64,000 nt of DNA, taken from the sequence record LR756508.1; one strand, given 5' to 3'. Below, piece by piece: positions 12,378-54,460 of this stretch. The notes under the pieces are model-generated. The model was not told the origin of the DNA. It did no database searches and saw only the letters and a program-made list of their open reading frames with translations. Position 1 is the stretch's first letter. The number at the start of each line of letters is the position of its first letter. The position numbers were made by a program, and so were the translations under genes.

Positions 12378-13274
12378 ATGAAAAAGGTTACGATTGGAAT
12401 TGGAGTTCTCGTTTTTCTTATTCTTTTTATCCTCCCTTGGGGATGCACGAGAGTTGATCAGGGGTTTAGGGCAGCAAAAGTTGATCTTATGGCTTCAGGA
12501 AAGGGAAGTGTTCAAGAGATTGGTCCTGGCCGAACGTTTTACGTCCCATGGCGAACCGATGTAGTTCCACTTCCAGTTCATATTCAGAGATATGCTTACG
12601 TGGCTGACAAAAATGAGGAGGCTGCTCAAGACCAAAGTATAAACGCAGTTTCTTCCGACAACCTCACTTTTAAAGTTGGAGTAGCATTGCACTATAAGGT
12701 CAATTCTTTGAATGGCTGTATCACTCGAATTTACCGAGAGTATAAAATTCAAAATTTCCGAAATTTTTCTCAGCAACAAATGCGTGATATTGTGCGCAGC
12801 AGTGTGAGAAACGTGTACAGCCAGTATGAAGCTACTCAGATATATGGGGAAATGCAACCTATCGTAATGGAGGAAGTCACGAATAGGGTAACAAAGGTTG
12901 TCTCGCAGAGAGTTTCGGTTGACGGACAGTCGTGCTTGATCGTAGATAATGTTAGTATTGTGGATATTGATCCTCCAAATGCCGTCAAGAAAGCTGTTCA
13001 GCGGAAGATGGAGGCTCAACAACGAGCACAAGAGGAGCAGTCAAACCTGCGCAGAGCTAAAATTGCTGCTAGAAAAGACAGTGTGAAAGCTTCGCAGCAG
13101 GCAGAGAACAATCGAATGATTCGGCAAAGCGTAACACCTGAACTAATCGAATGGAAGAAGATGCAGAACCAGATGGAGATCCTCCGAAAGAAGTGGGATG
13201 GCACTCTTCCTATGGTTCAAGGTGGCGGACAAGGTTTCATGTTTGATATGAGTGGCATCCAGAATAATCAGTAA
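12378..13274 (+). CDS. SPFH/band-7 (prohibitin-like) protein
   Basis: N-terminal TM, SSDNL..V.VAL.Y, IDPPNAVKKAVQRK coiled coil, KKWDGTLP. Confidence 0.88.
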   Translation: MKKVTIGIGVLVFLILFILPWGCTRVDQGFRAAKVDLMASGKGSVQEIGPGRTFYVPWRTDVVPLPVHIQRYAYVADKNEEAAQDQSINAVSSDNLTFKVGVALHYKVNSLNGCITRIYREYKIQNFRNFSQQQMRDIVRSSVRNVYSQYEATQIYGEMQPIVMEEVTNRVTKVVSQRVSVDGQSCLIVDNVSIVDIDPPNAVKKAVQRKMEAQQRAQEEQSNLRRAKIAARKDSVKASQQAENNRMIRQSVTPELIEWKKMQNQMEILRKKWDGTLPMVQGGGQGFMFDMSGIQNNQ

Positions 13275-13343: not shown

Positions 13344-13532
13344 ATGCATTTAAATCTAACAAACAAAACCTCTACAGTTCACTTGGGAAAAGATGAATGT
13401 TGGAAATGTAAAGGGACTGGAGAAACATTAGTTTCTAAACTTCAAATACAAAACACTGTCAGCTTTGATGAGGTACGTAAAACAAAAGAGTGTAGTAAGT
13501 GCGGAAGAACTGGAATGGTTCCGAAACGTTAA
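13344..13532 (+). CDS. small DnaJ-type zinc-finger protein
   Basis: CWKCKGTG and CSKCGRTG. Confidence 0.6.
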   Translation: MHLNLTNKTSTVHLGKDECWKCKGTGETLVSKLQIQNTVSFDEVRKTKECSKCGRTGMVPKR

Positions 13533-13547
13533 CAAACTGGATTTATT

Positions 13548-13772
13548 ATGTCTTTTCCATTTGATTTTGATCCTGAAAACTTTCAAATTCGAGAAGGAGT
13601 TCAGGGCGTTTGGCATTATCATCTTGCAAAAGGTGACAAATCAAATACTCTTTGTGGAGAACCCTCAATGAGCACAAAAGTTAGCATCTATCAATGGGGG
13701 AGTAAAAATCCTAGTCATATTCCTATTAGCTACTGTAGAGATTGCCAGAAAAAAGCCGTAAAACTTTCGTAG
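13548..13772 (+). CDS. hypothetical protein, possibly Zn-binding
   Basis: H..TLCG..CRDC. Confidence 0.6.
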   Translation: MSFPFDFDPENFQIREGVQGVWHYHLAKGDKSNTLCGEPSMSTKVSIYQWGSKNPSHIPISYCRDCQKKAVKLS

Positions 13773-13796
13773 GCTTGCTTAGAATTATCTTATAAT

Positions 13797-14063
13797 ATGC
13801 CTGTTTCCGAATACCTCGTTGTAAGTGATAAAAGCAACATAGTAGGTAAGGGGAATGGAGTCATTGAAGCCCTGCGGGATGCGGGTTTGAAAGTCACCGA
13901 AGCTGCTCTCTCGCCTGATGAGGGCTTACGAGATCCTAACAACTTTCTCGTCGCCCATGCCTCCAAGAAACTAGAAGAGAATGATATACAAAACGAGACA
14001 TTTGAAGTAAAGGTGGGCGAGGGACTAGGAGTAGGCAGCTATTTTAAACTCTATCCTCAGTAA
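13797..14063 (+). CDS. hypothetical protein
   Basis: 88-aa ORF. Confidence 0.6.
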   Translation: MPVSEYLVVSDKSNIVGKGNGVIEALRDAGLKVTEAALSPDEGLRDPNNFLVAHASKKLEENDIQNETFEVKVGEGLGVGSYFKLYPQ

Positions 14064-14156
14064 ATTGAAAGGAAATTCGTTTTCAGTCTTTGGTAGCAAA
14101 TTGAACTGATCTTAAAGTCAATAACGCTATATAATTAAGAGAAGCGTGGAAGTTCA

Positions 14157-14227
14157 TGCTTGGTAGCTCATTCTGGTTGAGCGTCGGCTCCTAAAGCCGA
14201 AGGTAGGTTCAATCCCTAACCGAGCAT
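14157..14227 (+). tRNA. tRNA with CTA anticodon (amber suppressor candidate; alternatively aberrant Arg-CCT)
   Basis: Acceptor TGCTTGG/CCGAGCA, D arm GCTC/GAGC, anticodon stem TCGGC/GCCGA around TCCTAAA, T arm GTAGG-TTCAATC-CCTAA; 2-nt variable region. Confidence 0.6.
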
Positions 14228-14232
14228 CATAA

Positions 14233-14324
14233 AAGCTGCGTACAGCAACCATTACCCTGGTTTCGTTGGTTCGAATCCAACCCAAAAAGAGCGGTGAAGC
14301 AAAACACCTAAAAAGCCGCAGCTT
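14233..14324 (+). ncRNA. clamp cassette A (degenerate permuted tRNA-like)
   Basis: AAGCTGCG/CGCAGCTT stem, TACAGCAA, T arm GTTGG-TTCGAAT-CCAAC placed before a GGTG/CACC hairpin. Confidence 0.7.
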
Positions 14325-14530
14325 GATATTCATTTCTTTTAAATCATTTCTCAAAAAAAATGAAAATGCCTGCAGGTCCAAGTCCTAAAGAGGTCAAATA
14401 TTCCAAAAAGGCTAATAAATATCTATGTGAAGAAAAAGAAAGCAATTTAAACTCTGAACCTCTCAACTTTGTAGACCTGCAGCTCTTCACTGAACAATTG
14501 GAGATTTTGAACAAAAAATATAAATAGCTC

Positions 14531-15229
14531 ATGTCACAAGACACATCTAACTTTTCATCTAGCTTAAAAAATCACTTCAATCCATTTACAGGCGTAGCAA
14601 AATTAGCTGCAGAGAAGATTGAAAGTATTGAAGGTTATACTGAAAAATCACCTTCAAAAATCAACGGGAGCTGGTATCAAGCAAAAACACACGTCATTGA
14701 TGAACCTAAAAACGATCAAGACGGTGATTTTATTGACAAGGTATTTTTAAACTTAGATCAGCATATCCAAGAAAATTTCCAAAACGAAAACATTTACGTT
14801 ACCGAAATTGACATTCAGTATGCACTTGCAAGTGAGAACGGCAGTGAGCCAGATTTTCAAAAGTTCGATGGCGTTATTGTTCGCCTGATTGTTGAAAATG
14901 ATGAATATAAAGCTGACCTGCAGGAAGTAGGATCTGTTTCTGACGTTGAAAACCTGCTTAGAGAGCACGACTCAAAACTCAAAGAAAAAAACGACTTTTC
15001 AATTGACGTAGGATATGGATTTGGAGAGTTGGGTCTCGATGAGCAGCTTGAAGATATAAAGGTTGATAATCAGTTGGGTTTTAAGGGTGATAGCTGGACC
15101 GGCTTCTATCTTGGGTTTCGTGCGAATGATGATGCAGACAGCTTGGAAGACGTATCTTCCATTGACTATGAACTTAAATCTAGAAAATTCGTTCGGGAAG
15201 ATGATGGTCAGGTCTACGAGGTAATATGA
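14531..15229 (+). CDS. hypothetical acidic protein
   Basis: 232-aa ORF. Confidence 0.7.
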   Translation: MSQDTSNFSSSLKNHFNPFTGVAKLAAEKIESIEGYTEKSPSKINGSWYQAKTHVIDEPKNDQDGDFIDKVFLNLDQHIQENFQNENIYVTEIDIQYALASENGSEPDFQKFDGVIVRLIVENDEYKADLQEVGSVSDVENLLREHDSKLKEKNDFSIDVGYGFGELGLDEQLEDIKVDNQLGFKGDSWTGFYLGFRANDDADSLEDVSSIDYELKSRKFVREDDGQVYEVI

Positions 15230-15452
15230 GGTTTATGTCAACGACTGAGTTGGTATAAAATTTTTTCTTTTTGAGAAAGAAGAAAACTATATGAACGAAG
15301 AGTGACCTGTGCTTTCCTTGGAGTTTCTAAAGATACAAATAGTATTAAAGAAAAGTGTAAGACTCTCAGAAAAAAATAAAATTGAAGCTACGAGAGACAG
15401 TATTTAAATCAATGACTGTTAGGTGTTGAAATGTAACTTAGACTGAAATAAA

Positions 15453-15803
15453 ATGGGGACTCCTAAAGGGTATAAAGTTCATAAGTTGTATAAGCTGAAT
15501 GGCAGTGAAATTGAATCAGTCAAAATCGAGTTTGACGAGAGAAATAAACACCTGTACAATTTCGCAGTTTCTCATCCCGAGTATTTCGCCCAAGAACCAA
15601 TATCTGTAAAAGATGATAACCATCCTCACGGTCTAATCGCTGCGACATCCTTTTCTGAAAAAGCAGAAACTCTGATTCGCTCAAGACAAAGTATCTCATT
15701 TCAAGAAAATCCTTTTAAGATTCTAAAAGAAAATAAGGATTTGATAATACTCTTTCTTTCAGGGATTGTTTGTGCAGTTCTCTCATTATACTTCATATTT
15801 TGA
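15453..15803 (+). CDS. hypothetical protein with C-terminal TM
   Basis: 116-aa ORF. Confidence 0.6.
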   Translation: MGTPKGYKVHKLYKLNGSEIESVKIEFDERNKHLYNFAVSHPEYFAQEPISVKDDNHPHGLIAATSFSEKAETLIRSRQSISFQENPFKILKENKDLIILFLSGIVCAVLSLYFIF

Positions 15804-15868
15804 AGACTTCGATTCTATTCTAAGTCTTAATGTAGAACAGAGGATAGGAGAACAAATCAAAATCATAT

Positions 15869-16078
15869 ATGAGTTTTTATGTAAATGACTGGAATGCTCC
15901 TTTCGTATCTCTTTTAGAAAACGAGATAAAATACTTGAAGGAACGAATTAGGTTTCCATTTGGAGTTCCTCAGAATATAAACTCAATCGTTTTAAAATAT
16001 AAGGAATATAAGGAAGAAGGTAGAAGTGAAGCAATGAGGAATTATAGAAGAAATAAAAAGGCTGATCCATTATTTTGA
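15869..16078 (+). CDS. hypothetical protein
   Basis: 69-aa ORF. Confidence 0.5.
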   Translation: MSFYVNDWNAPFVSLLENEIKYLKERIRFPFGVPQNINSIVLKYKEYKEEGRSEAMRNYRRNKKADPLF

Positions 16079-16124
16079 GTGACAAAAATAGTATAACTTG
16101 TTTCTTTCTTTTAAATTGTGTAAC

Positions 16125-16661
16125 ATGTCTGAATACAAGTGCTACGAGTGCGAGGTTGGATTGGATAAACATGACTATTGTGAAGACTGGTTTGGATACA
16201 CTATGGACACTGGATATATTTGTCCTTCTTGTGGTACCCAATACGAGAAAAAAGAATACTCTGAATTGAAGAGAAGAGATAAAAAGGAAGTTTGTCTGGT
16301 TGGAAGTCAGCGGCTTCGTTTAAAACATTTGGACAGCTTCGAAATCAAAGTTCCGTGGAACACTTCCGATAAAATTGAGTTTGAAGGAGAGGTATTTAAG
16401 AAATCTAGTGAAAAAACTAAAGATGGACATTTCAAATATAAGCTAGTTGACAGTATCTACGAAACTCAGATCAGTATAAAAAACTTGGAATCTCGTTACA
16501 TTCGGAAAAATGTAAATCAAAACACTCCTCCAAATTTCCTCGATTGGGAAGCTCCACATTCAGATGTAAGGATTGAAAATGATTCAATCTGGTCCTTCTT
16601 AGGATCAGTTAGCCTTAACGATCTAAATGAACTGAACTACTTACATAGGTATGACAGATGA
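16125..16661 (+). CDS. hypothetical protein with N-terminal Zn ribbon
   Basis: CYEC..CPSC; ORF track starts at 16098. Confidence 0.65.
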   Translation: MSEYKCYECEVGLDKHDYCEDWFGYTMDTGYICPSCGTQYEKKEYSELKRRDKKEVCLVGSQRLRLKHLDSFEIKVPWNTSDKIEFEGEVFKKSSEKTKDGHFKYKLVDSIYETQISIKNLESRYIRKNVNQNTPPNFLDWEAPHSDVRIENDSIWSFLGSVSLNDLNELNYLHRYDR

Positions 16662-16950
16662 CAGTAGTTTGATGGATGAAATTGACGAAAACGTTCACGT
16701 GCCTGTTTTCAAAAAACGACTTATGCAGAGAAAGATGGCTTTTCTGCATCAAGTTGACGAGGCACTTGCGGAGAAAGATATGACCGAGAAAGAACTTTTA
16801 GAGTTTGTTGGAACTGGTAAGTCTAATATGGCAGAGCTTTTTAGTGCCGATTACGACCTTTCTCTAAGAGAAATCACTCAACTTGAGTCAGCCTTGGATG
16901 AAGACCTGTTTAAAGTTAAGCGGAATATCGGACTGGAAGACGATAGTTAA
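16651..16950 (+). CDS. XRE/Cro-type HTH protein
   Basis: LAEKDMTEKELLEFVGTGKSNMAELFS..LSLREITQLESALD. Confidence 0.6.
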   Translation: MTDDSSLMDEIDENVHVPVFKKRLMQRKMAFLHQVDEALAEKDMTEKELLEFVGTGKSNMAELFSADYDLSLREITQLESALDEDLFKVKRNIGLEDDS

Positions 16951-16969
16951 TATATATTAATAGAAAGCA

Positions 16970-17023
16970 AGGCTGCTAACAGCAATGTATTGGATTCCTC
17001 TGTAAAAGGAAAAAATGCAGTCT
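16970..17023 (+). ncRNA. clamp cassette B (isolated Tyr-GTA anticodon stem-loop)
   Basis: AGGCTGC/GCAGTCT stem, TAACAGCAA, TTCCT-CTGTAAA-AGGAA. Confidence 0.75.
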
Positions 17024-17093
17024 GATGATCTTTCAGGTTATATTACTTTTTCTTAAGAATATTTCTATTTGTTTTTAAATATTGTAAGACTGA

Positions 17094-17209
17094 AAGCTAC
17101 CTGCAGCAATTCTCTTACCTCCTCGTAAAGGGAGAGGTTATGGGTTCGAGTCCCATCGCGCTGGCTTTTGGCGCGTAGCTCAATTGGTAGAGCGCTAACT
17201 GAGTAGCTT
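17094..17209 (+). ncRNA. clamp cassette C (circularly permuted tRNA, anticodon GTA or CGT)
   Basis: AAGCTAC/GTAGCTT stem; order is anticodon arm, T arm ATGGG-TTCGAGT-CCCAT, acceptor 3' CGCGCTG, linker, acceptor 5' TGGCGCG, D arm GCTC-AATTGGTA-GAGC. Confidence 0.85.
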
Positions 17210-17229
17210 GATGAGGTCTTTTATTTTTA

Positions 17230-17339
17230 AGGCTGCTAACAGCAGAACTTCTTATTATGGAAGCAGAAACACGTAGGTTCAAATCCTACCACTAGTGTGT
17301 GGCCGAGTCTGGTTAAGCATCTGCATAAAAATGCAGCCT
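17230..17339 (+). ncRNA. clamp cassette D (tRNA-Pro-like, opened at anticodon loop, 3-bp acceptor)
   Basis: AGGCTGC/GCAGCCT stem; TGGAA-GCAGA, T arm GTAGG-TTCAAAT-CCTAC, CAC-TAGT-GTG, D arm, then TCTGC which pairs with GCAGA. Confidence 0.8.
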
Positions 17340-17348
17340 GATATATTG

Positions 17349-17432
17349 TGGGTGAAGGAGTGGGACGACCCGCTCGATGACGTTTTCTACTGAGTTTTCT
17401 CGGGAGGACGTCATTCCGTAAGGATAAGCTCA
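17349..17432 (+). ncRNA. candidate four-way-junction structured RNA
   Basis: GAGTGGG/CCCGCTC, ATGACGT/ACGTCAT, TCC-GTAA-GGA, closing TGGGT/GCTCA. Confidence 0.4.
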
Positions 17433-17437
17433 TGAAA

Positions 17438-17512
17438 GCGGCAGTAGTTCAGTTTGATCAGAACACCGCGATGCCACTGCGGAAGTCGTGAGTTTAAATC
17501 TCGCCTGCCGCT
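17438..17512 (+). tRNA. tRNA-Gly(GCC), atypical D and T loops
   Basis: GCGGCAG/CTGCCGC acceptor, CCGCG-ATGCCAC-TGCGG, T loop TTTAAAT. Confidence 0.8.
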
Positions 17513-17684
17513 CTTTTCTTACCTATTAAAGACAAAACAACATGAAATTAAAGTTTAACATTCGTAAGCCAAATTTGAGAGGCACTGACGAGCCAAGAAA
17601 AATCGACAGGAAAAATGTAGTTGCTGCCGAGTCTTCTTCGGCTTGTAGTAGAAAGAAAAAGAAAAAAGAAGATTCAAAACAAAA

Positions 17685-17759
17685 GCGTCGGTAGTTCAAT
17701 TTGTAGAACATCTGATCTTTCCGATCAGAAGGTTGGAGGTTCAAATCCTCCCCGTCGCT
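17685..17759 (+). tRNA. Arg-type tRNA body with a 9-nt anticodon loop (identity undetermined)
   Basis: GCGTCGG/CCGTCGC, TCTGA-TCTTTCCGA-TCAGA, GGAGG-TTCAAAT-CCTCC. Confidence 0.6.
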
Positions 17760-17851
17760 CATTTGAATAGTTTTTGTAGCTGTTTATCAATAGTATTAAA
17801 AATAAGTTTTTTTGATATGGAAATTGATGTAAGGTAAAGGAAGATGGTTCC

Positions 17852-18259
17852 GTGGAGGCTAAGTCATCCTTCAAGCAACTTCTTAGTAGAGAGAAAAACA
17901 AGAGCCTGCTATCTGCAGGTTTGAGTCAAAACGAGCTTCCGTTCCATTGGAAAATGGTTGAACTTCCAAGTTTTCTTTATGATGGTGAGCCATACACGGC
18001 TAGAGCAACAAGAATTGATGTTAATGGAAGTCTTCTTGACGATTTCTTTAATGTCCTAAAAAAAGAGGTAGCCGAGGAAGATCTTAATAAGGAAGTTAGA
18101 GGTGTCTATAGAAGCGTCTTGGATAGCGTGTGGGATGAAGTGACTGATAATCTTTCTGAGATGCACAGCGAAGATGAAATGATTGGCTTCTACGAATTTG
18201 ATCTGGCTGACGTGGATGGACAAAAGATTCTACTTCTGCGGTATGCCGTGATCGATTAA
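17852..18259 (+). CDS. hypothetical protein
   Basis: 135-aa ORF. Confidence 0.65.
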   Translation: MEAKSSFKQLLSREKNKSLLSAGLSQNELPFHWKMVELPSFLYDGEPYTARATRIDVNGSLLDDFFNVLKKEVAEEDLNKEVRGVYRSVLDSVWDEVTDNLSEMHSEDEMIGFYEFDLADVDGQKILLLRYAVID

Positions 18260-18320
18260 ATTTTTCTTCATGGAACAGTATGTATATTCACACATTGAGT
18301 TAGAGTGACTTTGATGGGTA

Positions 18321-18380
18321 AAACTGCTAACAGCAACGCTGATTTTTTACCTTATCATTCACCAGGTAAAAAAGCAGTTT
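18321..18380 (+). ncRNA. clamp cassette E (single 10-bp hairpin)
   Basis: AAACTGC/GCAGTTT stem, TAACAGCAA, TTTTTTACCT-TATCATTCACC-AGGTAAAAAA. Confidence 0.75.
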
Positions 18381-18415
18381 GATGATCCCAATTTTTTTTA
18401 AACAAGTTTAACCTT

Positions 18416-18495
18416 GGAGATATGATCTAGTCTAGTCTAGGATGCGAGTTTGTCAAACTCGATGTCCCGAGTGCAAATCTCGGTGTCTCCGCCAT
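18416..18495 (+). tRNA. tRNA-Asp(GTC), encoded CCA
   Basis: GGAGATA/TGTCTCC, CGAGT-TTGTCAA-ACTCG, T loop TGCAAAT, ends GCCA. Confidence 0.8.
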
Positions 18496-18760
18496 ATTAT
18501 GCACTTTGATAAACTTCGGACTTGGCATGCGAGCGTGCTTAAACCGAGGCACGAGAGGCTTCCGTAGAAGCCTTAGTAGGTTTCCAGTAACCCAAAACGT
18601 AGAGCCCTTTTTGTTAGTATTGTCTTAGAGAGGCAAGCGGCAATGAGAGGAATTCCCATACTGGAATCCTCCGACTGCGTTCCGAAAGGCAGGCCCTCTC
18701 GAAGGAGTGGGCGTACCAGAGCCTCCAGGCAAGAAAGTCAAAAAGGGAAAACTGGAATAA

Positions 18761-18832
18761 GAGGCAGTAGTTTAGCTGGCAAAACGTTTGGATGCCATCC
18801 AGAAGTCGCTGGATCATTTCCAGCCTGCTGCT
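18761..18832 (+). tRNA. tRNA-Gly(GCC), second degenerate copy
   Basis: GAGGCAG/CTGCTGC, TTTGG-ATGCCAT-CCAGA, T loop ATCATTT. Confidence 0.6.
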
Positions 18833-19101
18833 CTTTTGATGAAGTAACAAAGTTTCTGCATTTTATGGCCTCTCCTCAAAATATACAAGAAGTATTTAAT
18901 GCTTCCAGCAAAATAGACAAGCAGCTTGAGGGCATACGGCCTTGTCGATCACACGCGATTCCACGGGGGGTTTCAGAGTCGGACCAGTTAGCGAACGATC
19001 AAGAAGAAAAATGCAAGTCGAAAAGTTCTGGAATGCATGCTGTCCTACGTAAGAGGCGGGAAGTTCCTGCAAAACTTCAAACAGTCGGGAAGTTTTAATA
19101 T

Positions 19102-19184
19102 CGCGGAGTAGAGCAGTCTGGTGTGCTCACTTGGTTCATGTCCAAGAGGTCGTCTTTTAAACGGTTCAAATCCTACCTCCGCTA
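19102..19184 (+). tRNA. initiator-type tRNA-Met(CAT) with an insertion in the T stem
   Basis: CGCGGAG start with C1 mismatch, CTTGG-TTCATGT-CCAAG, T stem GT[CTTTTAAAC]GG/CCTAC. Confidence 0.6.
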
Positions 19185-19198
19185 CACTTAAAAGCTTA

Positions 19199-19316
19199 AG
19201 GCTGCTCACAGCAAATCCTATATATTTTTTCCACATAAGGAAGAGATATGGGTTCGAGTCCCATCGGGCTGGAGTTTGGCGCGTAGCTTAACTGGTAAAG
19301 CTCTAATATGCAGCCT
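19199..19316 (+). ncRNA. clamp cassette F (circularly permuted tRNA, anticodon CAT)
   Basis: AGGCTGC/GCAGCCT stem; TTTTC-CACATAA-GGAAG, ATGGG-TTCGAGT-CCCAT, CGGGCTG-GAGTT-TGGCGCG, D arm GCTT-AACTGGTA-AAGC. Confidence 0.85.
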
Positions 19317-19322
19317 GTTTCT

Positions 19323-19399
19323 GGTCCCGTGGCCGAGTCTGGTTAGGCGCTTGTCTGCAAAACAAGTTTTTGACGTTAGTTCAAATCTAACCGGGACCT
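19323..19399 (+). tRNA. tRNA-Cys(GCA)
   Basis: GGTCCCG/CGGGACC, CTTGT-CTGCAAA-ACAAG, GTTAG-TTCAAAT-CTAAC. Confidence 0.88.
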
Positions 19400-19451
19400 C
19401 TTTTTTGTGTCTACTAAAAACATTTACCATAATCCAGCTCTCCTTTAGATC

Positions 19452-19739
19452 TTGACATGCAGCCAAAAAAGAGCAAATTTGAGAAAGTTTGTCAGAAACT
19501 CTGATCAAGACCTTAGCTCTATAATAGAATCCTTAAAAAACGAAGAGGAGATCGGGGGACTATTCTACTCAAAAAATACCGATCAAGTAACATTTCTTTC
19601 TCTCGCTAGTCGGAAGTCTTCTAACTTAAACCCATCCAAAAATGAAAGGATTAAGGTAAATGCCGTAAATAGATTGAAAAAGAGTGAAGTTCTAAACACT
19701 CTCCAAGAAATCAAACAAACACAGGATGGAAAGCGTTAA
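19452..19739 (+). CDS. hypothetical protein
   Basis: 95-aa ORF. Confidence 0.5.
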   Translation: MTCSQKRANLRKFVRNSDQDLSSIIESLKNEEEIGGLFYSKNTDQVTFLSLASRKSSNLNPSKNERIKVNAVNRLKKSEVLNTLQEIKQTQDGKR

Positions 19740-19968
19740 AGTTTGGAGTCGTTTTATCCGAGATCGCTACCGATGGGGAGTCTATGTTGATAATGAACTG
19801 CATGCTTTTGGGGTAGAAACTCAGAGGGTAACTTGGAGAGAAATGGATAAAGATAGGGATCGGTATCTGGAAAAAGCCCTCGAAGGGAAGACCGAACCTA
19901 CTCCGCACGATCCTTATAAAGTTCCGAATACGCCTCCTGAAGGTGCAGTCGAAAAGCTAAATACATGA
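19726..19968 (+). CDS. hypothetical protein
   Basis: 80-aa ORF. Confidence 0.6.
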   Translation: MESVKVWSRFIRDRYRWGVYVDNELHAFGVETQRVTWREMDKDRDRYLEKALEGKTEPTPHDPYKVPNTPPEGAVEKLNT

Positions 19969-20148
19969 GATGAGAGTAGGATAAAGAGTAATCGTTCTTA
20001 TTTCCAAAGTGCCAGTTTTACATTTCTTCAAAAGTCACCTGAGTACAATTAAAAAAGATTTTGATGCTCAATTTAATATTTAAATGTAAAATGAGGTGGA
20101 GTGTAAGAATTTAATCAAAATAAAAGACTCTCATAGAAAAGAACTCAT

Positions 20149-20475
20149 ATGAGCCACAAAGAAAGTAAGTTAAGAAAACTTATTCGTGAAGAAGTAAGAA
20201 GTATTTTAGAAGAAGATCATCAAATTGAGATTGGTAGTGTCGTTAGTCTTAAGAAGGACATTGATAAGGGTAAAGAAGGCAATGAGGCCATCGTTGTCGG
20301 TCGGTCTCAGAAAAACTATGACTGGAAAATTCTTTTGAAAAGAGACCTTCAAGGATATGTTTCTGTTGGAGAACTTCTTGTTTCATCCGAAGAAATTGAA
20401 CCTATTGGACGGACTCTTTCCGACGAAGAGTTAGATGATATCTACTCTGGCCGTGGATATGAAACTTGGGTCTAA
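20149..20475 (+). CDS. hypothetical protein with LRKLIREE N-terminal motif
   Basis: 108-aa ORF. Confidence 0.65.
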   Translation: MSHKESKLRKLIREEVRSILEEDHQIEIGSVVSLKKDIDKGKEGNEAIVVGRSQKNYDWKILLKRDLQGYVSVGELLVSSEEIEPIGRTLSDEELDDIYSGRGYETWV

Positions 20476-20557
20476 AAGATAAGTAAAGTTTAACAATCTG
20501 TTTCCTTAGAAATCGAGCTTTCTCATCTTTGGAAAGGACATCTAAATTAGATATGTC

Positions 20558-21355
20558 GTGAGATTTAAAGATCTGTTATTTGAGTATTCCGACGAAGAAC
20601 TTGAGAATTTGGATAAGGTTGTTCAAGAAGGCAACTGGCTTTATAATTTTGATCGTCCCATCTATAGGGCAAGTAAAGTTCAAGAAGAAAACTTCAAAGT
20701 TAAAGAAACTACAGAAAGAGGGGGGACGCGAGATACAATTTTTTATGTTGATGAGCTGATCCATCTTTTTTATGAGCAATGTTTTTCAAACCTTCCTGAT
20801 CGGAGACACAGCCGTTTCGGCTCGGTGTTCAGAGACAATATAGAGACTTATTTAGACCCTACACAAAGCATGGAGAAAGAGTCTTATGTTGTTCTCCCAC
20901 ATGCTTCTGCTAAAATAAGCTCACGAATTGAAGATCCTTTTACAGTTTTAGACGAAATAAAAAGATTCGCGGATCGTATTTTCAAGTATCCCTTAGATGA
21001 AAACTTCAACGATCTAATGGGCTACATAAAAGAAAGATCACAGTACATCTATAAGTTCGTTAAATTTCTTGGCGATTTGAAAAATCAAAAGACACCTGAC
21101 GTATCGATAAATGAGCTCGGTTGTCCCGAAAAACTCGAAAGTAAGATAAAACGTGAGGTAAAAGCTCTTGAGAATGATAAACTCGAAAATTATATATTAA
21201 ATACTGCTCAGAATATCTACCTGTACTTTGACGATATCGAATCTGGATACCCAAAAAGCTCAAAACAGGGAGGTGAAGTGATGTGGGATGGAAAATATCT
21301 TCAAATCAAAGAAGACTTCTACGAACATTACGTCTATCATAAAACAGGTAAATGA
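20558..21355 (+). CDS. hypothetical protein
   Basis: 265-aa ORF. Confidence 0.7.
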   Translation: MRFKDLLFEYSDEELENLDKVVQEGNWLYNFDRPIYRASKVQEENFKVKETTERGGTRDTIFYVDELIHLFYEQCFSNLPDRRHSRFGSVFRDNIETYLDPTQSMEKESYVVLPHASAKISSRIEDPFTVLDEIKRFADRIFKYPLDENFNDLMGYIKERSQYIYKFVKFLGDLKNQKTPDVSINELGCPEKLESKIKREVKALENDKLENYILNTAQNIYLYFDDIESGYPKSSKQGGEVMWDGKYLQIKEDFYEHYVYHKTGK

Positions 21356-21361
21356 AAACAT

Positions 21362-21434
21362 ACGGGAGAAATCTCAATTGGCGAGAGGCGAGGCTCCAAC
21401 CCTCGCAGGCTGGGTTCGATCCCCAGATCCCGTG
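21362..21434 (+). tRNA. tRNA-Trp(CCA)
   Basis: GCGAGG-CTCCAAC-CCTCGC, CTGGG-TTCGATC-CCCAG, ACGGGA/TCCCGT acceptor. Confidence 0.8.
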
Positions 21435-21931
21435 CTACTTAATGTCATATAAGAAAACTGAATAACTATACTTCGTAAGGTATGGATGATAAAACTAAAA
21501 ATGCGCTGGAAGACTTAAGAAAAAACACTGGCAAACGTCGTCCTAAAGTAATCAAAAAGACGGAATACCATACTGTTGTGTATCAGCCTGAAAACAGAGA
21601 ACGGTTAAGTAAAAACTTCAAGTCTTCAGGAAATATTGATGATTCGTAGAGTTAATCGGTTAGGTGTAACTTAAGTGTATGGCGTAAATAACTTCAGTCT
21701 TAAACTATGGCAAAAAAGAAAACAACTGCTGCTGAGACCTATCACTCTAAGAAAGATCGAAAAAAATTTCTTGAGGTTGATAAGGCAGCTCGTCTTTTGA
21801 TTGAGAAAATAGAAAACAAGGAAGACGTGGGATAGAACCGAAGCTGTATTCATCTATAAACTGTTTAGTAAAGTTTCATAATTTCCTAAGAACATTATCT
21901 GAACACTATTGTAAAAATTAATGGATTAAAT

Positions 21932-22015
21932 GTGGAGCATTGGCAAGTCTGGTCGAAGCCGCTAGGTCGTGGTCCTAGTAATCCTCATTCGTTGGTTCAA
22001 ATCCAACTGCTCCAC
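21932..22015 (+). tRNA. tRNA-His(GTG) with 12-nt variable loop
   Basis: G-1 plus TGGAGCA/TGCTCCA, C73, CTAGG-TCGTGGT-CCTAG. Confidence 0.85.
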
Positions 22016-22114
22016 CTTTAAAATTAAATCAAGACAACATACTAAATTGAATACACACCGACTAAACGCTTATATAAATGCACAATTAAAAAAGTTATAA
22101 ATAAAGCAAATTTG

Positions 22115-22873
22115 ATGAGCAAATATAAAGATGACATAATACGACTCCGTAAGCAAGAAAAAACTTATGATGAAATCGAGGAAAAGCTTGACTGTTCAAG
22201 AGCTACGATATCTCTCCACTGTCAGAAAAAAGGTCTCGGAGGAAAACAGGAAAATATAAGCGATAAAAAAGCTAAAAAAATCGATTAGCTTCGTTTGGAT
22301 GGAATATCGATAAGAAAAATTAGTAAAAAATTAGATGTTTCTGAAGGTTCTGTTCAGAAATATACCTCTGAGGAAACGAAACAAAAATTGCAAAAAGAAA
22401 GAATAAAAACTGGAAGTGAAAAACGAAAATCAATTGACAGAGAAGAATTTATTGAGAGTAAATTTTATAAGGGGGTTGTAGCAGAAGAGAAAGTAAAAAC
22501 AAAATTCATTGAACTTGGATATAAAGTATATGAACCTTTGATTAGGTCGGTTGAAGATCTCATAGTTAAAATTGATACTGAATTCAAAAAGGTTCAGGTA
22601 AAACATGGAACTTATAGAAATGGATGTGTCGTAGCAGATTTAGGACGAAGTTGCAACTCTTATAACGATTCAATGAAAGCAAAATGTTATCATAAAGATG
22701 ATGTTGATATATTTGTAATTTATTCTTCGAAAATAGATAAAGTTTATTTTGTAAAGTTTGAGGATGCTCCTAATCATTCTATAAACTTGAGAGTTGAAGA
22801 TCCAAAGAAAAATGATGTTGGAAATATAAGATGGGCAAAAGACTACGAAATAAAAAGAGTTTTAGGTAGATAA
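22115..22873 (+). CDS. HTH plus PD-(D/E)XK homing endonuclease interrupted by an in-frame TAG (22286)
   Basis: ATG 22115 is in frame with ORF 22295; DLIV..KKVQVKH..VDIFVIY PD-(D/E)XK pattern; readthrough or pseudogene. Confidence 0.7.
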
Positions 22874-37477: not shown

Positions 37478-38488
37478 ATGAAAGAATCGATTAACAAGGA
37501 GAAGAGTGCCATCACCATCACCGAAGAAGCAGAGGAGGCCGGAGAGTCTGTTCATCTCCCTGAAAACTTGAGTCAAATTCGCAGGTTTATTCGAAACGAG
37601 GCTCCTGACCTTCTTCCCGATGGCTTGAAGATGAAAGAGTCGAAGTGGAAGACGTTGATTCGTTCCATTCTTCGGGGGAAGAACATCTTGTTTACAGGGC
37701 ACTCTGGCTGCGGGAAAACCATCGCTGCCATGTCTGCAGTTCGCGCCTTGAAGCGAAAGTTTTTTTACTTTAACCTTGGCGCAACCCAGCGACCGCGAAC
37801 AAGCCTGATCGGAACTCGCGAAGTTGAAGATGGATCGACATACTTTTCTCCTTCCGTTTTCGTGGAAGCCATTCAAACTGAAGGGGCAGTAATCCTTCTC
37901 GATGAGCTTTCACGGGCGCACCCTGAAGCTATTAACATTCTCCTTACTCCTCTCGATCCGAAGCAGCGCTACCTGCGACTTGACGAGTCCGACGAGGAGG
38001 ATACTGTAAAGGTTCACGATAGCGTTTCCTTTGTCGGAACTGCCAACATTGGAAACGAGTATACTGCGGCACGGCGGATCGACAGGGCCATGTGGGATCG
38101 GTTCACGGTTATTGAAATGGATCTTCTCGGGCGAGAAGAAGAAAAAGATCTTATCCTGGAAACCTACCCCGAGTTGAAAGAAGAAACAGCCGCCAAGCTC
38201 GCTCGGATTGCGGAGCAAACGCGAGATCAAGCTCAAAGTAGCAGTCCCGAGGTTGAAACAATTATTTCTACTCGACAAAACCTGGAAGCCGCTGAAATGA
38301 TTCGGGACGGATTGTCGCTTGAAGAATCCGCTGAGGTAGCTTACTACCCAAACTACGATAAGGAAGGTGGAGTCGATTCTCCCCGAAACTACGTGAAGAA
38401 AGTTGTGCAGCGGGAAATTGATGATGAAAGCGACGATGAGCTATTCTCAAGTCGAGACATCGAGGAAGCTCCGCGCCGCAATAATTAA
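37478..38488 (+). CDS. MoxR-family (CbbQ/NirQ-like) AAA+ ATPase
   Basis: GHSGCGKT, ILLDELSRA, TANIG, AMWDRF. Confidence 0.88.
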   Translation: MKESINKEKSAITITEEAEEAGESVHLPENLSQIRRFIRNEAPDLLPDGLKMKESKWKTLIRSILRGKNILFTGHSGCGKTIAAMSAVRALKRKFFYFNLGATQRPRTSLIGTREVEDGSTYFSPSVFVEAIQTEGAVILLDELSRAHPEAINILLTPLDPKQRYLRLDESDEEDTVKVHDSVSFVGTANIGNEYTAARRIDRAMWDRFTVIEMDLLGREEEKDLILETYPELKEETAAKLARIAEQTRDQAQSSSPEVETIISTRQNLEAAEMIRDGLSLEESAEVAYYPNYDKEGGVDSPRNYVKKVVQREIDDESDDELFSSRDIEEAPRRNN

Positions 38489-38508
38489 ATCACAAACCAT
38501 TAGCGTTT

Positions 38509-40407
38509 ATGAAGCCTACCACTAAAAAATCCCAAAACTACTCCGATTGGTGGCTCGATGACATTACCAAGCGGAGCGTCAGAAAAGCCAGAAATGGCAA
38601 GAGTCAGTCGGAAAAAGACCTTGCCGCGCTTGCTTCCGTCAAGAGGTCCATAGCACAGTTTGTCCACATTCTTACGGGAAAGAGGCTGCGCGTGAAGTTC
38701 AAGGAAGAAGGCAAGGAGTCTTTCACCGACGGCGAGACCGTGGTTGTTTCTTCGGACATCGGTCCAGAGACTTACGATCAAACTGTCGGAATTGCCCTCC
38801 ACGAGGGCTCTCACATTGTGAAAACGGACTTCTACATCTTCAAAAACATTGAAGATTATATTCCAAGTCACATCGAAGACTTGGCTGACAAGAAGTTCGG
38901 AGAAACTGAGTTTTTGGAGCAAGTTCTCCATAAAATTCTAAATTACGTAGAAGACAGGCGGATCGATAATTGGGTGTTTTCTACCTCGCCTGGATACAAA
39001 GGCTACTACCATTCGATGTATGAAGCTCATTGGCACAACGAGAAGATTACCGAGCGCCTCAAGTCCGACGACTTTCGCGATGAGACGATGCAGTCCTATA
39101 TGTTTCGCCTCATTAACCTCACGAACGATGCAGGCGATCTGGATGCGTTGAACGGGCTCCGCGAGATCCATGATAGAATTGATCTCGATAACATCGCTCG
39201 TCTCCAAAGCACCGAAGATGTGTTGGAAGTCTCTCAAGACATCTTGGAGATTATTATCGAGAACGTCAATGACATTGAGTTCGAGGAAGGGGGCGACGTG
39301 AAGTTTGTTCCTGGCGAAGGCGATGGAGATGGCGATCCCATCGATTGGGACGAGCTTTCTGAAGAAGAAAAAGAAGCTCTTAAAGATGCCATTGAAGACC
39401 AGATGGACTTTTTGGATGGTAACATTGATAAAGAGCCAATTGATCCTGAAGACGCTGAAGAGCTTGAAGCTTTGGAAGACGCTGGCGTCTCTACGCACGA
39501 GGTGGGTGAGGGAACCGGCAATCCTCATGGCATTGATTGTGTAGTTATCGATAAGCTTACCGAGAGGCTTGTTAACAAGAGCAAGTTCCCGATCCTAAAA
39601 ACCTATGAGGTCGATAGGTCCAAAGAAGCCGTAAATCAAGGCGTTGTTCTTGGAAGGAAGCTCGGCAAAAAGCTCAAAGTTCGAGACACAAAACGAAATA
39701 CGAAATTTTCCCGCAGAAAAAGTGGACGATTGGATCAAGCTCTTCTCTCGGAGGTAGGCCACACCGAGCGCCTTTTCTATGAGGAAATTATTGATGAGTA
39801 CGATGACGCATTCGTTCATATAAGCGTGGACGCAAGTGGCTCGATGTCAAATGACAAGTGGAGCGAAGCCATGAAAACGTGCGTGGCCGTAGCTAAGGCT
39901 TGCTCTATGATTGGAAACGTTCGGGTCCAGATTTCTTTTCGGTCAACAACGAGCGCTGGATTTTCTTCGGGGGAAACCAAGCCTCTTATTTTGATGGCTT
40001 ACGATTCCGATGAAAGTTCGTTTAATCACGTCAAGAAGTACTTTCCGAACATTAATTCTGGAGGCACGACTCCTGCTGGCCTTACATTTGAGGCCATTCA
40101 AGAGAAAATTCTTCTTGTGAAAGACGACGAAGATGGGTATTTCGTAAACCTGTCTGATGGTAGGCCAAACTTTAGCGCAGATGATTTCCAATACGGATCT
40201 GAAAACGGGGCTGCTCACACTAGAAAACAGGTCCGGAAAATCAAAAAGAAAGGAATTGAAGTCGTCGCTTACTTCATTTCGTCAGGAAGTAGCAGCGTTG
40301 ACTCCGCATTTAGCAGGATGTATGGCCCTGACGACTACTACATCGATCCATCAAATATCACCCAAGTCTCGAAAACTCTAAACAAAAAGTTCCTTAAAGA
40401 AAAGTGA
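38509..40407 (+). CDS. VWA-domain protein with N-terminal HExxH domain (MoxR partner)
   Basis: ALHEGSH, NYVEDRRI, VDASGSM MIDAS, GGTTP, LSDG. Confidence 0.85.
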   Translation: MKPTTKKSQNYSDWWLDDITKRSVRKARNGKSQSEKDLAALASVKRSIAQFVHILTGKRLRVKFKEEGKESFTDGETVVVSSDIGPETYDQTVGIALHEGSHIVKTDFYIFKNIEDYIPSHIEDLADKKFGETEFLEQVLHKILNYVEDRRIDNWVFSTSPGYKGYYHSMYEAHWHNEKITERLKSDDFRDETMQSYMFRLINLTNDAGDLDALNGLREIHDRIDLDNIARLQSTEDVLEVSQDILEIIIENVNDIEFEEGGDVKFVPGEGDGDGDPIDWDELSEEEKEALKDAIEDQMDFLDGNIDKEPIDPEDAEELEALEDAGVSTHEVGEGTGNPHGIDCVVIDKLTERLVNKSKFPILKTYEVDRSKEAVNQGVVLGRKLGKKLKVRDTKRNTKFSRRKSGRLDQALLSEVGHTERLFYEEIIDEYDDAFVHISVDASGSMSNDKWSEAMKTCVAVAKACSMIGNVRVQISFRSTTSAGFSSGETKPLILMAYDSDESSFNHVKKYFPNINSGGTTPAGLTFEAIQEKILLVKDDEDGYFVNLSDGRPNFSADDFQYGSENGAAHTRKQVRKIKKKGIEVVAYFISSGSSSVDSAFSRMYGPDDYYIDPSNITQVSKTLNKKFLKEK

Positions 40408-51724: not shown

Positions 51725-52876
51725 ATGGAAAAGCCTTTGGAAATTCAAACTTTTTTGAGAGGTGAGGGCTCTATGAGTGAACTTAAGAAAGAGCCCTACA
51801 ATTTGAAGATTAATACCGATGACAAAGGAAGACGCATTCTTTTCAAATACAACCAGATCAAGTCAGATCTAAGTCTTAAAATTACGAGAGAAGCAAGAGG
51901 ATTAATTCTTGATCGAAAAAACAACTGGAAAGTGGTAAGTTTTCCTTTCAAAAAGTTCTTTAACTGGGAAGAAGACTTTGCTGTTGATATAGACTGGGAA
52001 ACTGCTAAAGTGTATGACAAGTTGGATGGAACTTGCTCAATCATTTATTTATATGATGGCGAGTGGATAATGCATACTCTTGGAACCGTCGAGGGCGGCG
52101 GACCTGTCCACACCGACGAGTTAATCTCACTTCCTTTTGATGGAACCTTTTCCGATCTTTTCTTTCACGCCTGGAAGAAAGAGTATGGAGAAGAAAAATT
52201 TGAGTCTTTAAACAAAGACTACATCTACGTTTTTGAGCTCATGACTCCATACAACATCGTTGTAAAGGAACACAGCGATTATAAAATCTCTCTACTTGCC
52301 GTAAGAGATCGTAAGACATTAAATGAACTGCCAGTTGAACAATTTTCCGACCAGTTTAAAACTCCAAGAACCTATAGTTTTTCGGATTTGACTCCCGAAA
52401 AATTAAAGAAAACACTGGAGGATTTTCCTCCTGATGAAGAAGGGTACGTGGTCCGGGACGATAACTTTAACAGGATAAAGTTAAAGAATCCTGGCTACGT
52501 AATGAAGCATAGAATGAAAAATAATGCCGTTAATAGAAAACACGGCATTTTAGAAATTGTTCTTAACGAGGAAGAAGATGACTTTATATCCTCTTTTCCC
52601 GGCCTAAAAAAACAGATCGAAGGCGTCAAAGATGACCTGGATGAACTGATTGGTTTTTTGGAGCAGAAGTATCAAAACTTTAATGGTGAAAGCGTAGACC
52701 CACAGGACAGTCAAGAACGAAAAGAGTTTGCCCTGAAAGTTCAAGATCAAATTCCATCAAGTCTGCAAGGGTATATGTTTGCCAGGCTTTCAACCGATGA
52801 TAGCTTCGAAGAAATACTAAAAGACTCTAACGTTTCAAATGTAGCCACCTCTTTAAATAATTTCAACGATAGGTAG
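51725..52876 (+). CDS. T4 Rnl1-like RNA ligase
   Basis: REARG, FPFKKFFN, motif I KLDG, FELM, EGYV, IKLKN. Confidence 0.85.
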   Translation: MEKPLEIQTFLRGEGSMSELKKEPYNLKINTDDKGRRILFKYNQIKSDLSLKITREARGLILDRKNNWKVVSFPFKKFFNWEEDFAVDIDWETAKVYDKLDGTCSIIYLYDGEWIMHTLGTVEGGGPVHTDELISLPFDGTFSDLFFHAWKKEYGEEKFESLNKDYIYVFELMTPYNIVVKEHSDYKISLLAVRDRKTLNELPVEQFSDQFKTPRTYSFSDLTPEKLKKTLEDFPPDEEGYVVRDDNFNRIKLKNPGYVMKHRMKNNAVNRKHGILEIVLNEEEDDFISSFPGLKKQIEGVKDDLDELIGFLEQKYQNFNGESVDPQDSQERKEFALKVQDQIPSSLQGYMFARLSTDDSFEEILKDSNVSNVATSLNNFNDR

Positions 52877-53236: not shown

Positions 53237-54460
53237 ATGTACACAAAAACGTTTACAGAGGTTGCAAAAGAAAATGGTTTTGGTGACATTAATGAAACTG
53301 AAGACGAGAAGTTTTCTACTGTAAAAGATTATGTAGTAAATGTTTATAAGACCCATGAGGAAGTTGGCTTTGTGGACAACCTGGACCATCCACATACATC
53401 TGATATTTCTGATGTCAACCACTCGACATATTTAAAGGAAGAGGCAGTTCAAGATGTGACTGTCTGCTATACGCTCTGGCAAAATCCTCTCTACGTCAAA
53501 CTTCTTTATCTTTCTTTTTTATCTCAGATTCTATACAGTGACATTTTGAATGTCAAAAAATTTGTGATCGTTACTGATTACAAACTTGAACCACTCGTTT
53601 GGGATGTCTTTCGTCCATTTGCACAGGATCATTCAGGAAACTTCGAGTTAGAAGTGAAAGCAGTTGACAGGCAAAGAGTGGTCTGGTCTGATGTTGCTCC
53701 AAACGTAAGAATGCCTGTAAGATTGAATAAATATGTCGTTTCCACGTTTGATGACTTAAGAAAAACTGATCTACTTGTTTTATCTGACTGCGAAAGCTTT
53801 ATCTTTGGAGAAAAAAGTCAGATTTATAGTCAACTACATTCGCAGTATTCGGAATCAGATAATTTTCCAGTTCTCGGCTGCGAAGAAAATCACAACAGCT
53901 CTTCCGTCTTCCTGCAGCGGCGAGAAGATCTGGCTAATATGATGCACGACAATGAAGAGTATGTCAACTGGTGTGCAAAAAGATTGGAGGTATCTAAAGA
54001 TAATTTTGTAGATAAAGTAGTAAAAAGAAACAATTGGTTTTTAACCTGCTGGTTCGTATTTGATAATGAAAAATATAAGCTCAATGATTCTCACTGGCAA
54101 GATTACGTTGAATGGTCAAACCTTTACTCGATGTACTGCGACGAGTCCATTTATTTAACTTATGGATGGTGCGCAGAAGATTACACAGTTAAAGACGTTA
54201 AAGTTATTAACGGGTTAGAATTTATTCATTCTCCTTACTGCGAGTCTTTTTTTGAACAAGACGAGTATGATAAAACAGGAATTGTCCATCCGCTGCACGG
54301 AAAATGGGCTGAAGATTTCTGGGTTCATGATTTCTATGACTCGATTCAAGATGGATTCGAGGCGGAGTTGAAACAAGCTATGAGTGAAAAAGTAAGCTTA
54401 AGGGAGTTACTGCCTCAATATAAAGATAGCTACTATACTGAGCCAATTCAAAACGAATGA
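53237..54460 (+). CDS. GT-A-like protein (family with 49844 and 55451)
   Basis: KLLYLSFLSQILYSDI, LSDCE, CDE, HP. Confidence 0.5.
   Translation: MYTKTFTEVAKENGFGDINETEDEKFSTVKDYVVNVYKTHEEVGFVDNLDHPHTSDISDVNHSTYLKEEAVQDVTVCYTLWQNPLYVKLLYLSFLSQILYSDILNVKKFVIVTDYKLEPLVWDVFRPFAQDHSGNFELEVKAVDRQRVVWSDVAPNVRMPVRLNKYVVSTFDDLRKTDLLVLSDCESFIFGEKSQIYSQLHSQYSESDNFPVLGCEENHNSSSVFLQRREDLANMMHDNEEYVNWCAKRLEVSKDNFVDKVVKRNNWFLTCWFVFDNEKYKLNDSHWQDYVEWSNLYSMYCDESIYLTYGWCAEDYTVKDVKVINGLEFIHSPYCESFFEQDEYDKTGIVHPLHGKWAEDFWVHDFYDSIQDGFEAELKQAMSEKVSLRELLPQYKDSYYTEPIQNE

Follow-up and report, generated by a model that had tools for sequence, protein, structure and literature searches.

A permuted tRNA-like element in a phage tRNA array belongs to a recurrent RNA family that clusters with a predicted Ro60-like protein

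Cassette D is an element of about 110 nt at positions 17230-17339 on the plus strand of a window comprising the last 64 kb of LR756508.1, an unannotated 484-kb record of an uncultured phage; coordinates refer to this window unless the record is named. The cassette lies in an array of tRNA genes, and a preliminary description made from the DNA letters had presented it as a tRNA-Pro-like mimic, opened at the anticodon loop and provided with a sealed 3-bp acceptor. Direct reading of the sequence found all the motifs listed there, with TGGAA-GCAGA on the 5' side and the D arm and TCTGC on the 3' side. The description had left unmentioned that the cassette begins and ends precisely with the strands of a 7-bp terminal stem, AGGCTGC/GCAGCCT, hereafter P1. 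The parts of the element are given below, with reference to R1, a covariance model trained on 25 permuted elements from IMG/VR, none of them from the window.

17230-17236, plus strand: P1 5' strand, AGGCTGC; pairs with 17333-17339 in the minimum free energy (MFE) and centroid structures and aligns to the P1 pairs of R1
17237-17245, plus strand: TA followed by ACAGCAG, the conserved internal-loop motif NN-ACAGCA(A/G) of the family, presumed to be a protein-binding site
17248-17263, plus strand: local hairpin CTTCT-TATTAT-GGAAG of the MFE structure, in the place of the family's anticodon-arm element
17258-17262, plus strand: TGGAA, 3' part of the anticodon-like loop; together with GCAGA it aligns to R1 columns "..auAAaccag"
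17263-17267, plus strand: GCAGA, positions 39-43, 3' strand of the anticodon-type stem
17268-17272, plus strand: 5-nt variable loop, AACAC
17273-17289, plus strand: T arm, GTAGG-TTCAAAT-CCTAC, with a perfect 5-bp stem and a canonical T loop; the T-arm pairs covary in the family
17290-17299, plus strand: sealed acceptor-like stem, CAC-TAGT-GTG, a 10-nt hairpin of 3 bp with a 4-nt loop
17300-17301, plus strand: TG, corresponding to U8 G9
17302-17318, plus strand: D arm, GCC-GAGTCTGGTTA-AGC; its stem has a single C.A mismatch, which the R1 alignment marks
17319, plus strand: A26
17320-17324, plus strand: TCTGC, positions 27-31, 5' strand of the anticodon-type stem; perfect complement of 17263-17267 and equally of 17242-17246
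17325-17332, plus strand: A-rich 3' linker, ATAAAAAT; an A-rich linker ahead of the P1 3' strand characterizes the family
17333-17340, plus strand: P1 3' strand, GCAGCCT, then an unpaired G, from structure prediction and the R1 alignment

Read from 5' to 3', the interior passes from the 3' strand of the anticodon-type stem through the variable loop, T arm, closed acceptor-like hairpin and D arm to the 5' strand of the same stem. The nucleotides that make tertiary contacts in tRNA are all kept (U8, A14, G18 G19, A21, G15:C48, G53-C61 and the T loop UUCAAAU); the elbow of T loop and D loop and the anticodon-type stem are thus intact, as had been claimed. The proposed pairing of GCAGA with TCTGC is perfectly complementary as described, but it is not unique. 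GCAGA is present twice, so that the pairing as drawn is one of two possibilities: the second copy, at 17242-17246 within the conserved motif, exists by virtue of the G at the last motif position and pairs with TCTGC equally well. ViennaRNA slightly favors the conformer that uses this copy (-33.9 kcal/mol, versus -30.4 kcal/mol for the tRNA-like conformer). Because the hairpin at 17248-17263 shares the G of GCAGA, merely 3-4 bp of it survive in the tRNA-like conformer.

The anticodon-like UGG is correctly placed, but positions 33 and 37 are both A. The D-arm 17-mer GTGGCCGAGTCTGGTTA is identical to the tRNA-Cys of the phage at 19329 and the T-loop 15-mer GGTTCAAATCCTACC to its tRNA-Met at 19163, which indicates a chimeric, tRNA-derived origin and leaves the assignment to tRNA-Pro weak and unjustified. 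No tRNA was called inside 17230-17339 by ARAGORN or Rfam; the sole Rfam tRNA match touching the cassette (17175-17290, 25.4 bits) fuses the 5' half of the neighboring cassette C with the 3' half of D. Cassette D lacks both the contiguous cloverleaf of transfer RNA (RF00005), with its 7-bp open acceptor and 7-nt anticodon loop, and the full acceptor stem, discriminator and processed junction of a functional permuted tRNA gene. Its sequence contains no CCA and no apparent bulge-helix-bulge motif. Since the acceptor is a sealed 3-bp hairpin, the RNA offers RNase P no cut that would yield a chargeable end, and aminoacylation is impossible; in this respect the earlier view of cassette D as a mimic, not a tRNA for translation, was correct.

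The same flanks, which we call the handle, bracket five other cassettes in the window, with compensatory changes in the stem sequence, and a seventh handle RNA of the phage lies outside it.

14233-14324, window: T arm alone as cargo
16970-17023, window: anticodon-like hairpin with loop CUGUAAA
17094-17209, window, cassette C: permuted tRNA mimic with a 7-bp closed acceptor
18321-18380, window: other hairpin
19199-19316, window, cassette F: permuted tRNA mimic with a 7-bp closed acceptor
22209-22263 of locus L257 (record 71,209), in a small tRNA cluster outside the window: other hairpin

Cassette C alone has an outer stem, AAGAC/GUCUU (17087-17100 with 17203-17221), split from P1 by UGA in one strand and by GAUGAG in the other. 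This stem fits a kink-turn (K-turn), with a 3-nt bulge and tandem G.A pairs. Its 5' strand, GACUGAAAG, also resembles the canonical Ro-binding motif GNCGAA(N)G.

Pattern scans of IMG/VR detected the ACAGCA motif in tRNA arrays of unrelated phages. The hits were passed to a script requiring a 7-bp complement in register and then a G; this G was not required in the first search, where most real-looking elements had it anyway, and was required in later scans. The outcome was 210 non-redundant handle elements in IMG/VR, and at least 427 after the addition of bacterial loci. An in-register 7-bp P1 followed by G was found at 211 of 1338 ACAGCAR sites, compared with 15-27 when the register was shifted, and all seven P1 pairs occur as several Watson-Crick types across the family. 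The recurrence of the handle is not a search artefact. From 5' to 3', the consensus opens with an A/U-rich leader, followed by P1 (about ARGAYNC) and NN-ACAGCAA; a G-poor linker leads to the cargo and an A-rich one from there to the P1 3' strand, after which come G and then U/A. The motif is conserved in every window cassette of the family; its last position is G in about 4% of members, cassette D among them.

Cassette D carries the complete handle, in the form AGGCTGC / TA-ACAGCAG / ATAAAAAT / GCAGCCT-G at 17230-17340. Its ends are clamped by the conserved 7-bp stem and ACAGCA(A/G) loop of a family of more than 400 members, and the notion of a tRNA opened at the anticodon loop is too simple. 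The 14-mer GGCTGCTAACAGCA was by itself too unspecific as a search pattern. A BLAST search of the array against cultured phages returned the source record and tRNAs alone, and no phage relatives were found through the neighboring open reading frame (ORF) at 16098-16661.

The cargo carried by the handle is bimodal in length. At one extreme it is no more than an anticodon-like hairpin, and at the other a circularly permuted tRNA body that is almost complete, comprising T arm, closed acceptor and D arm. Elements with short cargo hold a hairpin; of the 269 that were folded, 35% show 7-nt loops and 25% agree with the anticodon-loop signature CU-NNN-RA (0-3% in shuffled sequences), with UUU and GUU as the commonest triplets. 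Long cargo usually has the permuted order T arm-closed acceptor-D arm (40 cases, including cassette D), and in some members it is a non-permuted core with P1 in the acceptor's place (e.g., L245, L246 and L220). A sealed acceptor is not special to D; it is the rule among permuted family members, and likewise in YrlA. When applied to 25 permuted members, RNAalifold recovered P1, the T stem, the acceptor-like stem and the D stem unaided, with double changes in 19 of 21 pairs.

The handle exits the tRNA body 5' of the anticodon arm, and the exit point varies between 2+3, 3+2 and 5+0 splits of the stem strand. Cassette D has all five 5'-strand nucleotides on the 3' segment (5+0), a type shared by 6 of the 25 aligned relatives, whereas cassette C is split 2+3; the two permutation points do differ, as the preliminary description had said. 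R1 matched cassette D over the whole model (17227-17342, 58.3 bits, E=2.5e-9). It also matched cassette C (84.9 bits, E=1.1e-14), cassette F (77.6 bits, E=3.4e-13), the window element at 14230 (39.3 bits, E=1.7e-5) and, elsewhere in the phage genome, the element at L257 22206 (34 bits, E=1.9e-4). The resemblance of cassette D to the family is not due to chance.

Clustering of the ORFs around element-bearing phage loci revealed one protein family in 28 of 71 loci, the next commonest being found in seven. A hidden Markov model (HMM) of this family matched 28 of 70 element-bearing phage loci and 9 of 184 control loci. In all 28 phage loci the gene, hereafter Ro-like, and the elements share a strand, and the distance between them is mostly below 400 nt. 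GTDB genomes, scanned independently with one handle variant, gave at least 120 matches, where about two were expected by chance. The matches listed came mainly from metagenome-assembled genomes of Bacillota, along with Clostridium tertium DSM 2485, Oribacterium parvum ACB1 and Enterococcus species. Among the bacterial loci in the matches listed, the Ro-like gene is present in 59 of 80, with the RNAs on the same strand in 58 of these 59 and a median gap of 26 nt; each locus has one to eight RNAs, mostly upstream of the gene. The source phage encodes the Ro-like gene at record positions 85,184-86,756 (L257 36184-37756), on the same strand as cassette D (HMM E=4e-113 and 5e-41). No Ro-like match to the family HMM was found in the 64-kb window.

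Pfam assigned DUF2828 to all nine partner-family members and DUF7788 to eight of the nine, with a weak match to VWA_2, and the family carries a DxSxS metal-ion-dependent adhesion site motif. The AlphaFold model of the partner protein had a predicted local distance difference test score (pLDDT) of 76.7 and a predicted template modeling score (pTM) of 0.72. Its top seven Foldseek matches in the PDB were all full-length Ro60/TROVE proteins, with E-values from 4.5e-9 to 2e-5; the entries comprise 9kop and 9l5y (phage phiLo Ro60), 2nvo (D. radiodurans Rsr), 2i91, 1yvp and 9nf8, with Xenopus and human Ro60 included. A sequence-profile search of the PDB gave marginal Ro60 matches (E-values 0.046-1.5), and Pfam TROVE did not match the partner family. 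Structure modeling thus predicts a Ro60/TROVE plus vWA fold for the DUF2828-DUF7788 protein.

After the Ro-like gene, the handle RNAs are most often accompanied by RtcB (PF01139; 20 loci) and WYL-domain proteins (17+8 loci). Two uncharacterized families lie upstream of the RNA arrays in 17 loci each (L265-L344): a 412-aa protein with a WYL domain and a 303-aa protein with no Pfam match. Both are probably regulators of the Ro-like/RtcB operon. Cassette D had been proposed as a substrate or decoy for nucleases or repair enzymes, and a tie of its family to RNA-repair enzymes receives indirect support from gene neighborhoods, in that homologous arrays stand beside the Ro60-like protein and often RtcB.

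This arrangement can be compared with that of YrlA (RF02553). YrlA and Y RNAs bind Rsr/Ro60 through a terminal stem and loop, with GNCGAA(N)G as the Ro-binding motif of Y RNAs (PMC4201824), and the elbow is thought to recruit a tRNA-binding effector (10.1101/312249; PMC4201824). Like cassette D, YrlA is modular, with a stem formed by the 5' and 3' ends beside a conserved loop and a tRNA-like domain in the order T arm-closed acceptor-like hairpin-D arm, in which the elbow contacts are kept and no free CCA is present; an origin from tRNAs has been proposed for it as well (PMC4201824; 10.1101/312249). YrlA genes, like those of the handle family, cluster with a Ro60-fold protein and often with RtcB, some copies lying beside tRNAs, and the Salmonella operon rtcR-rsr-yrlBA-rtcBA (PMC7790460; 10.1101/312249) is paralleled by loci combining handle RNA, Ro-like gene, RtcB and WYL protein. 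In contrast to YrlA, the partner of the handle family is not recognized as TROVE by sequence profiles, and the cargo varies much more widely, ranging between bare anticodon-like hairpins and non-permuted cores, in arrays of up to eight. While YrlA is defined by physical binding to Ro60/Rsr, the family of cassette D shows genomic linkage to a predicted Ro60-fold protein. The acceptor-like stem of D, at just 3 bp, also sets it apart from YrlA. Two sibling cassettes matched the Rfam YrlA model below its gathering score (C, 43.8 bits, E=2.7e-7; F, 27.5 bits).

A structural parallel to the partner family is the Thermus phage phiLo, whose Ro60 (PMC12135203; 9KOP, 9L5Y) gave the best structural matches. 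There too, a phage Ro60-fold protein is combined with phage partner RNAs, Yrl1 and Yrl2, that have a 5'-3' stem flanking an internal loop. The phiLo protein, however, belongs to the canonical TROVE proteins, a CGAA motif led to its RNAs, and no tRNA-like module has been described for them. In Cyanidioschyzon merolae and some other algae, permuted tRNA genes mature to working tRNAs via a circular intermediate. Such genes resemble cassette D in placing the 3' half ahead of the 5' half, with a linker between the acceptor strands, but they have full acceptor stems, a bulge-helix-bulge junction and maturation, none of which is found in D. The b7a-tRNA, as described in a secondary account, is a tRNA-like noncoding RNA beside RtcB that closely resembles a genuine tRNA (Burroughs and Aravind 2016, cited in 10.1101/312249). 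By that description it shares with cassette D a place in RNA-repair neighborhoods, and the window has an SPFH/Band-7 gene (12378-13274) directly upstream of the tRNA and cassette array; the same description reports no handle motif. The stable RNAs C and D of the T4 tRNA cluster were set aside as they have no handle motif. A reading as transfer-messenger RNA, suggested by GCA-AAC after the motif, was likewise rejected: P1 has no G3.U70, no T arm adjoins the handle, and the start of the cargo is unconserved.

We consider it probable that cassette D is a Y-RNA-like noncoding RNA and a partner, or a trimmed copy of a partner, of a divergent Ro60-type protein encoded by the same phage, given that the handle family clusters with the Ro-like gene and that the phage encodes this gene. 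Several observations count against this reading. P1 pairing was a selection criterion of the scans, and its covariation therefore rests mainly on the register control, not on an unbiased alignment. The Foldseek TM-scores of the partner protein are just 0.35-0.52. The Ro-like gene is not adjacent to cassette D: the two are separated by about 350 kb on the linear record, or by 132 kb should the genome be circular. The gene is read as two overlapping ORFs in different frames, the ATG of the C-terminal ORF lying 14 nt before the TAA of the N-terminal one, and so could be broken or split, frameshifted or mis-assembled. In place of GNCGAA(N)G, cassette D has TAACAGCAG with the motif ACAGCA(A/G); it gave no Rfam YrlA match at E<=5 in the region searched (13500-22500) and did not reach the 69-bit gathering threshold. 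Since the handle motif, the sequence family of the partner and the Rfam score all differ from YrlA, cassette D is not filed there but as a variant of the Y-RNA kind. Lastly, D scores lowest in R1 of the three permuted cassettes and departs from the family norm in the C.A mismatch of its D stem, in the G at its last motif position and in its 3-bp acceptor, the shortest of the 40 permuted members (mode 7-8 bp), where part of the stem is reduced to 4 nt against 14 model positions. These departures raise the possibility of a decaying copy.

The main rival builds on them and takes cassette D for a decayed, non-functional relic of a normal family member or of a tRNA-Met/tRNA-Cys recombination. The strings shared with tRNA-Cys and tRNA-Met, suggestive of a recent chimeric origin, would fit this, as would a phage Ro-like gene spread over two frames. 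The preliminary description had itself named full acceptor stems in homologs as a sign of simple decay; stems of 7-8 bp are usual at the family level, so that the 3 bp of D look like trimming or decay, and D may be a trimmed copy. In YrlA, however, no part varies more in length or is less constrained than the acceptor-like stem, which is dispensable for the L-shape (10.1101/312249). With a perfect 7-bp P1, 5-bp T stem and 5-bp anticodon-type stem, all elbow nucleotides kept and a full-length R1 match, a dead relic appears unlikely to us. Another proposal, that the shared flanks are a processing device trimming tRNA-array transcripts (a small self-cleaving ribozyme or an RNase site) and the tRNA-like interior is incidental, would suit the location of the elements between tRNAs with short A/U-rich spacers, the CUGAUGA-like 3' flanks of some window copies and the K-turn-like outer stem of cassette C. 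HDV-like ribozymes, named after hepatitis delta virus, do occur downstream of phage tRNAs. Yet no Rfam ribozyme was found at E<=5 in window positions 13500-22500 or in five bacterial loci, where hammerhead, twister, HDV-like, hatchet and pistol models all failed to match. The UGAUGA flank is unconserved outside the source phage, the bacterial elements form arrays upstream of the Ro-like gene instead of standing inside tRNA arrays, and anticodon-like loops are strongly enriched in the cargo, all of which makes a processing device very unlikely. On the same grounds we discarded a hammerhead, K-turn or C/D-box reading of the flank, which is unconserved in other phages, the only convincing K-turn-like outer stem being that of cassette C; a twister-like "stem-UAA-CA" or HDV-like theta ribozyme has no Rfam match and no second helix. 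It is least likely of all that cassette D is a genuine permuted tRNA gene, circularized and then reopened at the acceptor into a working tRNA-Pro as in C. merolae, despite the permuted order and an anticodon-like UGG beside the 3' stem strand. Several relatives (e.g., L241, L160, L165, L212 and L189) do carry N73-CCA and a short linker between 7-bp acceptor strands, and YrlA of M. smegmatis is cleaved by RNase P and gains CCA (PMC4201824). In D, by contrast, a 3-bp acceptor closed by 4 nt has no CCA and leaves an RNase P site no space, the nucleotides at 33 and 37 are un-tRNA-like, and no bulge-helix-bulge is apparent; moreover, the same handle bears bare hairpins and non-permuted cores that could not be spliced into tRNAs.

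If cassette D is a Y-RNA-like partner of the Ro-like protein, it would be transcribed with the tRNA array and released by processing of the neighboring tRNAs. By analogy with the terminal stem and CGAA loop through which Y RNAs bind Ro60, and in view of the synteny, the handle would bind the Ro-like ring. The tRNA-like module could then be presented to factors that bind tRNA (repair ligases, exoribonucleases, modification enzymes or host anticodon nucleases, for instance), and the ribonucleoprotein might serve as a tether, a gate or a decoy in conflicts over tRNA damage and repair while infection proceeds. We also put forward, tentatively and as a rather doubtful extension, that handle RNAs form a programmable display library, in which varied anticodon arms and tRNA bodies are mounted on a common handle for the Ro-like protein. 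Such mimics could titrate host anticodon nucleases, or else recruit RtcB or Rnl1-type ligases and exonucleases to tRNAs that have been cleaved; cassette D would mimic a tRNA broken 5' of the anticodon loop, its two GCAGA copies switching the handle between exposed and occluded states. Lys-UUU-like and Asn-GUU-like loops are the commonest in handle RNAs, and tRNA-Lys and tRNA-Asn are classical targets of anticodon nucleases.

Other features of the window were recorded alongside. The first gene of the array (14157-14228) is a tRNA with anticodon CUA, of the amber suppressor type (labeled Pyl by ARAGORN), and TAG still terminates 6 of 48 long ORFs. The tRNA-Met call at 19102-19185 is 84 nt long and scores weakly in Rfam (31.2 bits); an odd insertion precedes its T loop, and the pairing of its T stem is poor. 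G+C-rich stretches between tRNAs (17340-17435, 18495-18760 and 18880-19080) look structured, have no Rfam match and are not handle RNAs; a 151-aa ORF overlaps 18643-19098. Further along, an RNA ligase of the T4 Rnl1 family and a protein with an HD domain and P-loop kinase are encoded at 51725-52876 and 54457-55449, likely a tRNA healing-and-sealing pair and part of the repair context for the Y-RNA-like reading. A 632-aa protein of no detectable family comes after a MoxR-type AAA+ ATPase (37478-40407). The 632-aa protein and a 407-aa ORF of the window were considered as Ro proteins and rejected, neither having a match in the PDB or Pfam. A TnpB/IS605 OrfB-type gene (62698-63885) lies near the window end.

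Ro60/Y-RNA particles have been described in animals, in about 5% of bacteria and in a few phages. In the collections scanned, a separate and numerous set of loci, in phages and gut bacteria, repeats the same logic, with a predicted Ro60-fold ring protein, a terminal-stem handle RNA, a tRNA mimic, an RtcB neighbor and a putative nucleic-acid-sensing regulator. It is set apart from known systems by the protein family DUF2828, currently without an assigned function, by the RNA motif and by arrays with many different anticodon-like loops. Neither the handle RNA family nor DUF2828 as a Ro60-like protein is described in Rfam 15 or in the literature searched, a body of work outside which most subscription journals fall. 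The RNA family is thus absent from Rfam and the DUF2828-linked variant of Ro/Y-RNA type appears new, although the family may already have been described in that wider literature. For the annotation of LR756508.1, the consequence is that no fewer than seven "cassettes" of its tRNA arrays are neither tRNAs nor junk. More broadly, DUF2828 would be handed a testable function and Rfam would be given a missing RNA family, while the cultured hosts Clostridium tertium, Enterococcus and Oribacterium would open tRNA mimicry in RNA repair or phage-host conflict to direct study. Should the display library prove true, it would represent a second, previously unrecognized system of the Ro/Y-RNA type, common in Bacillota and their phages.
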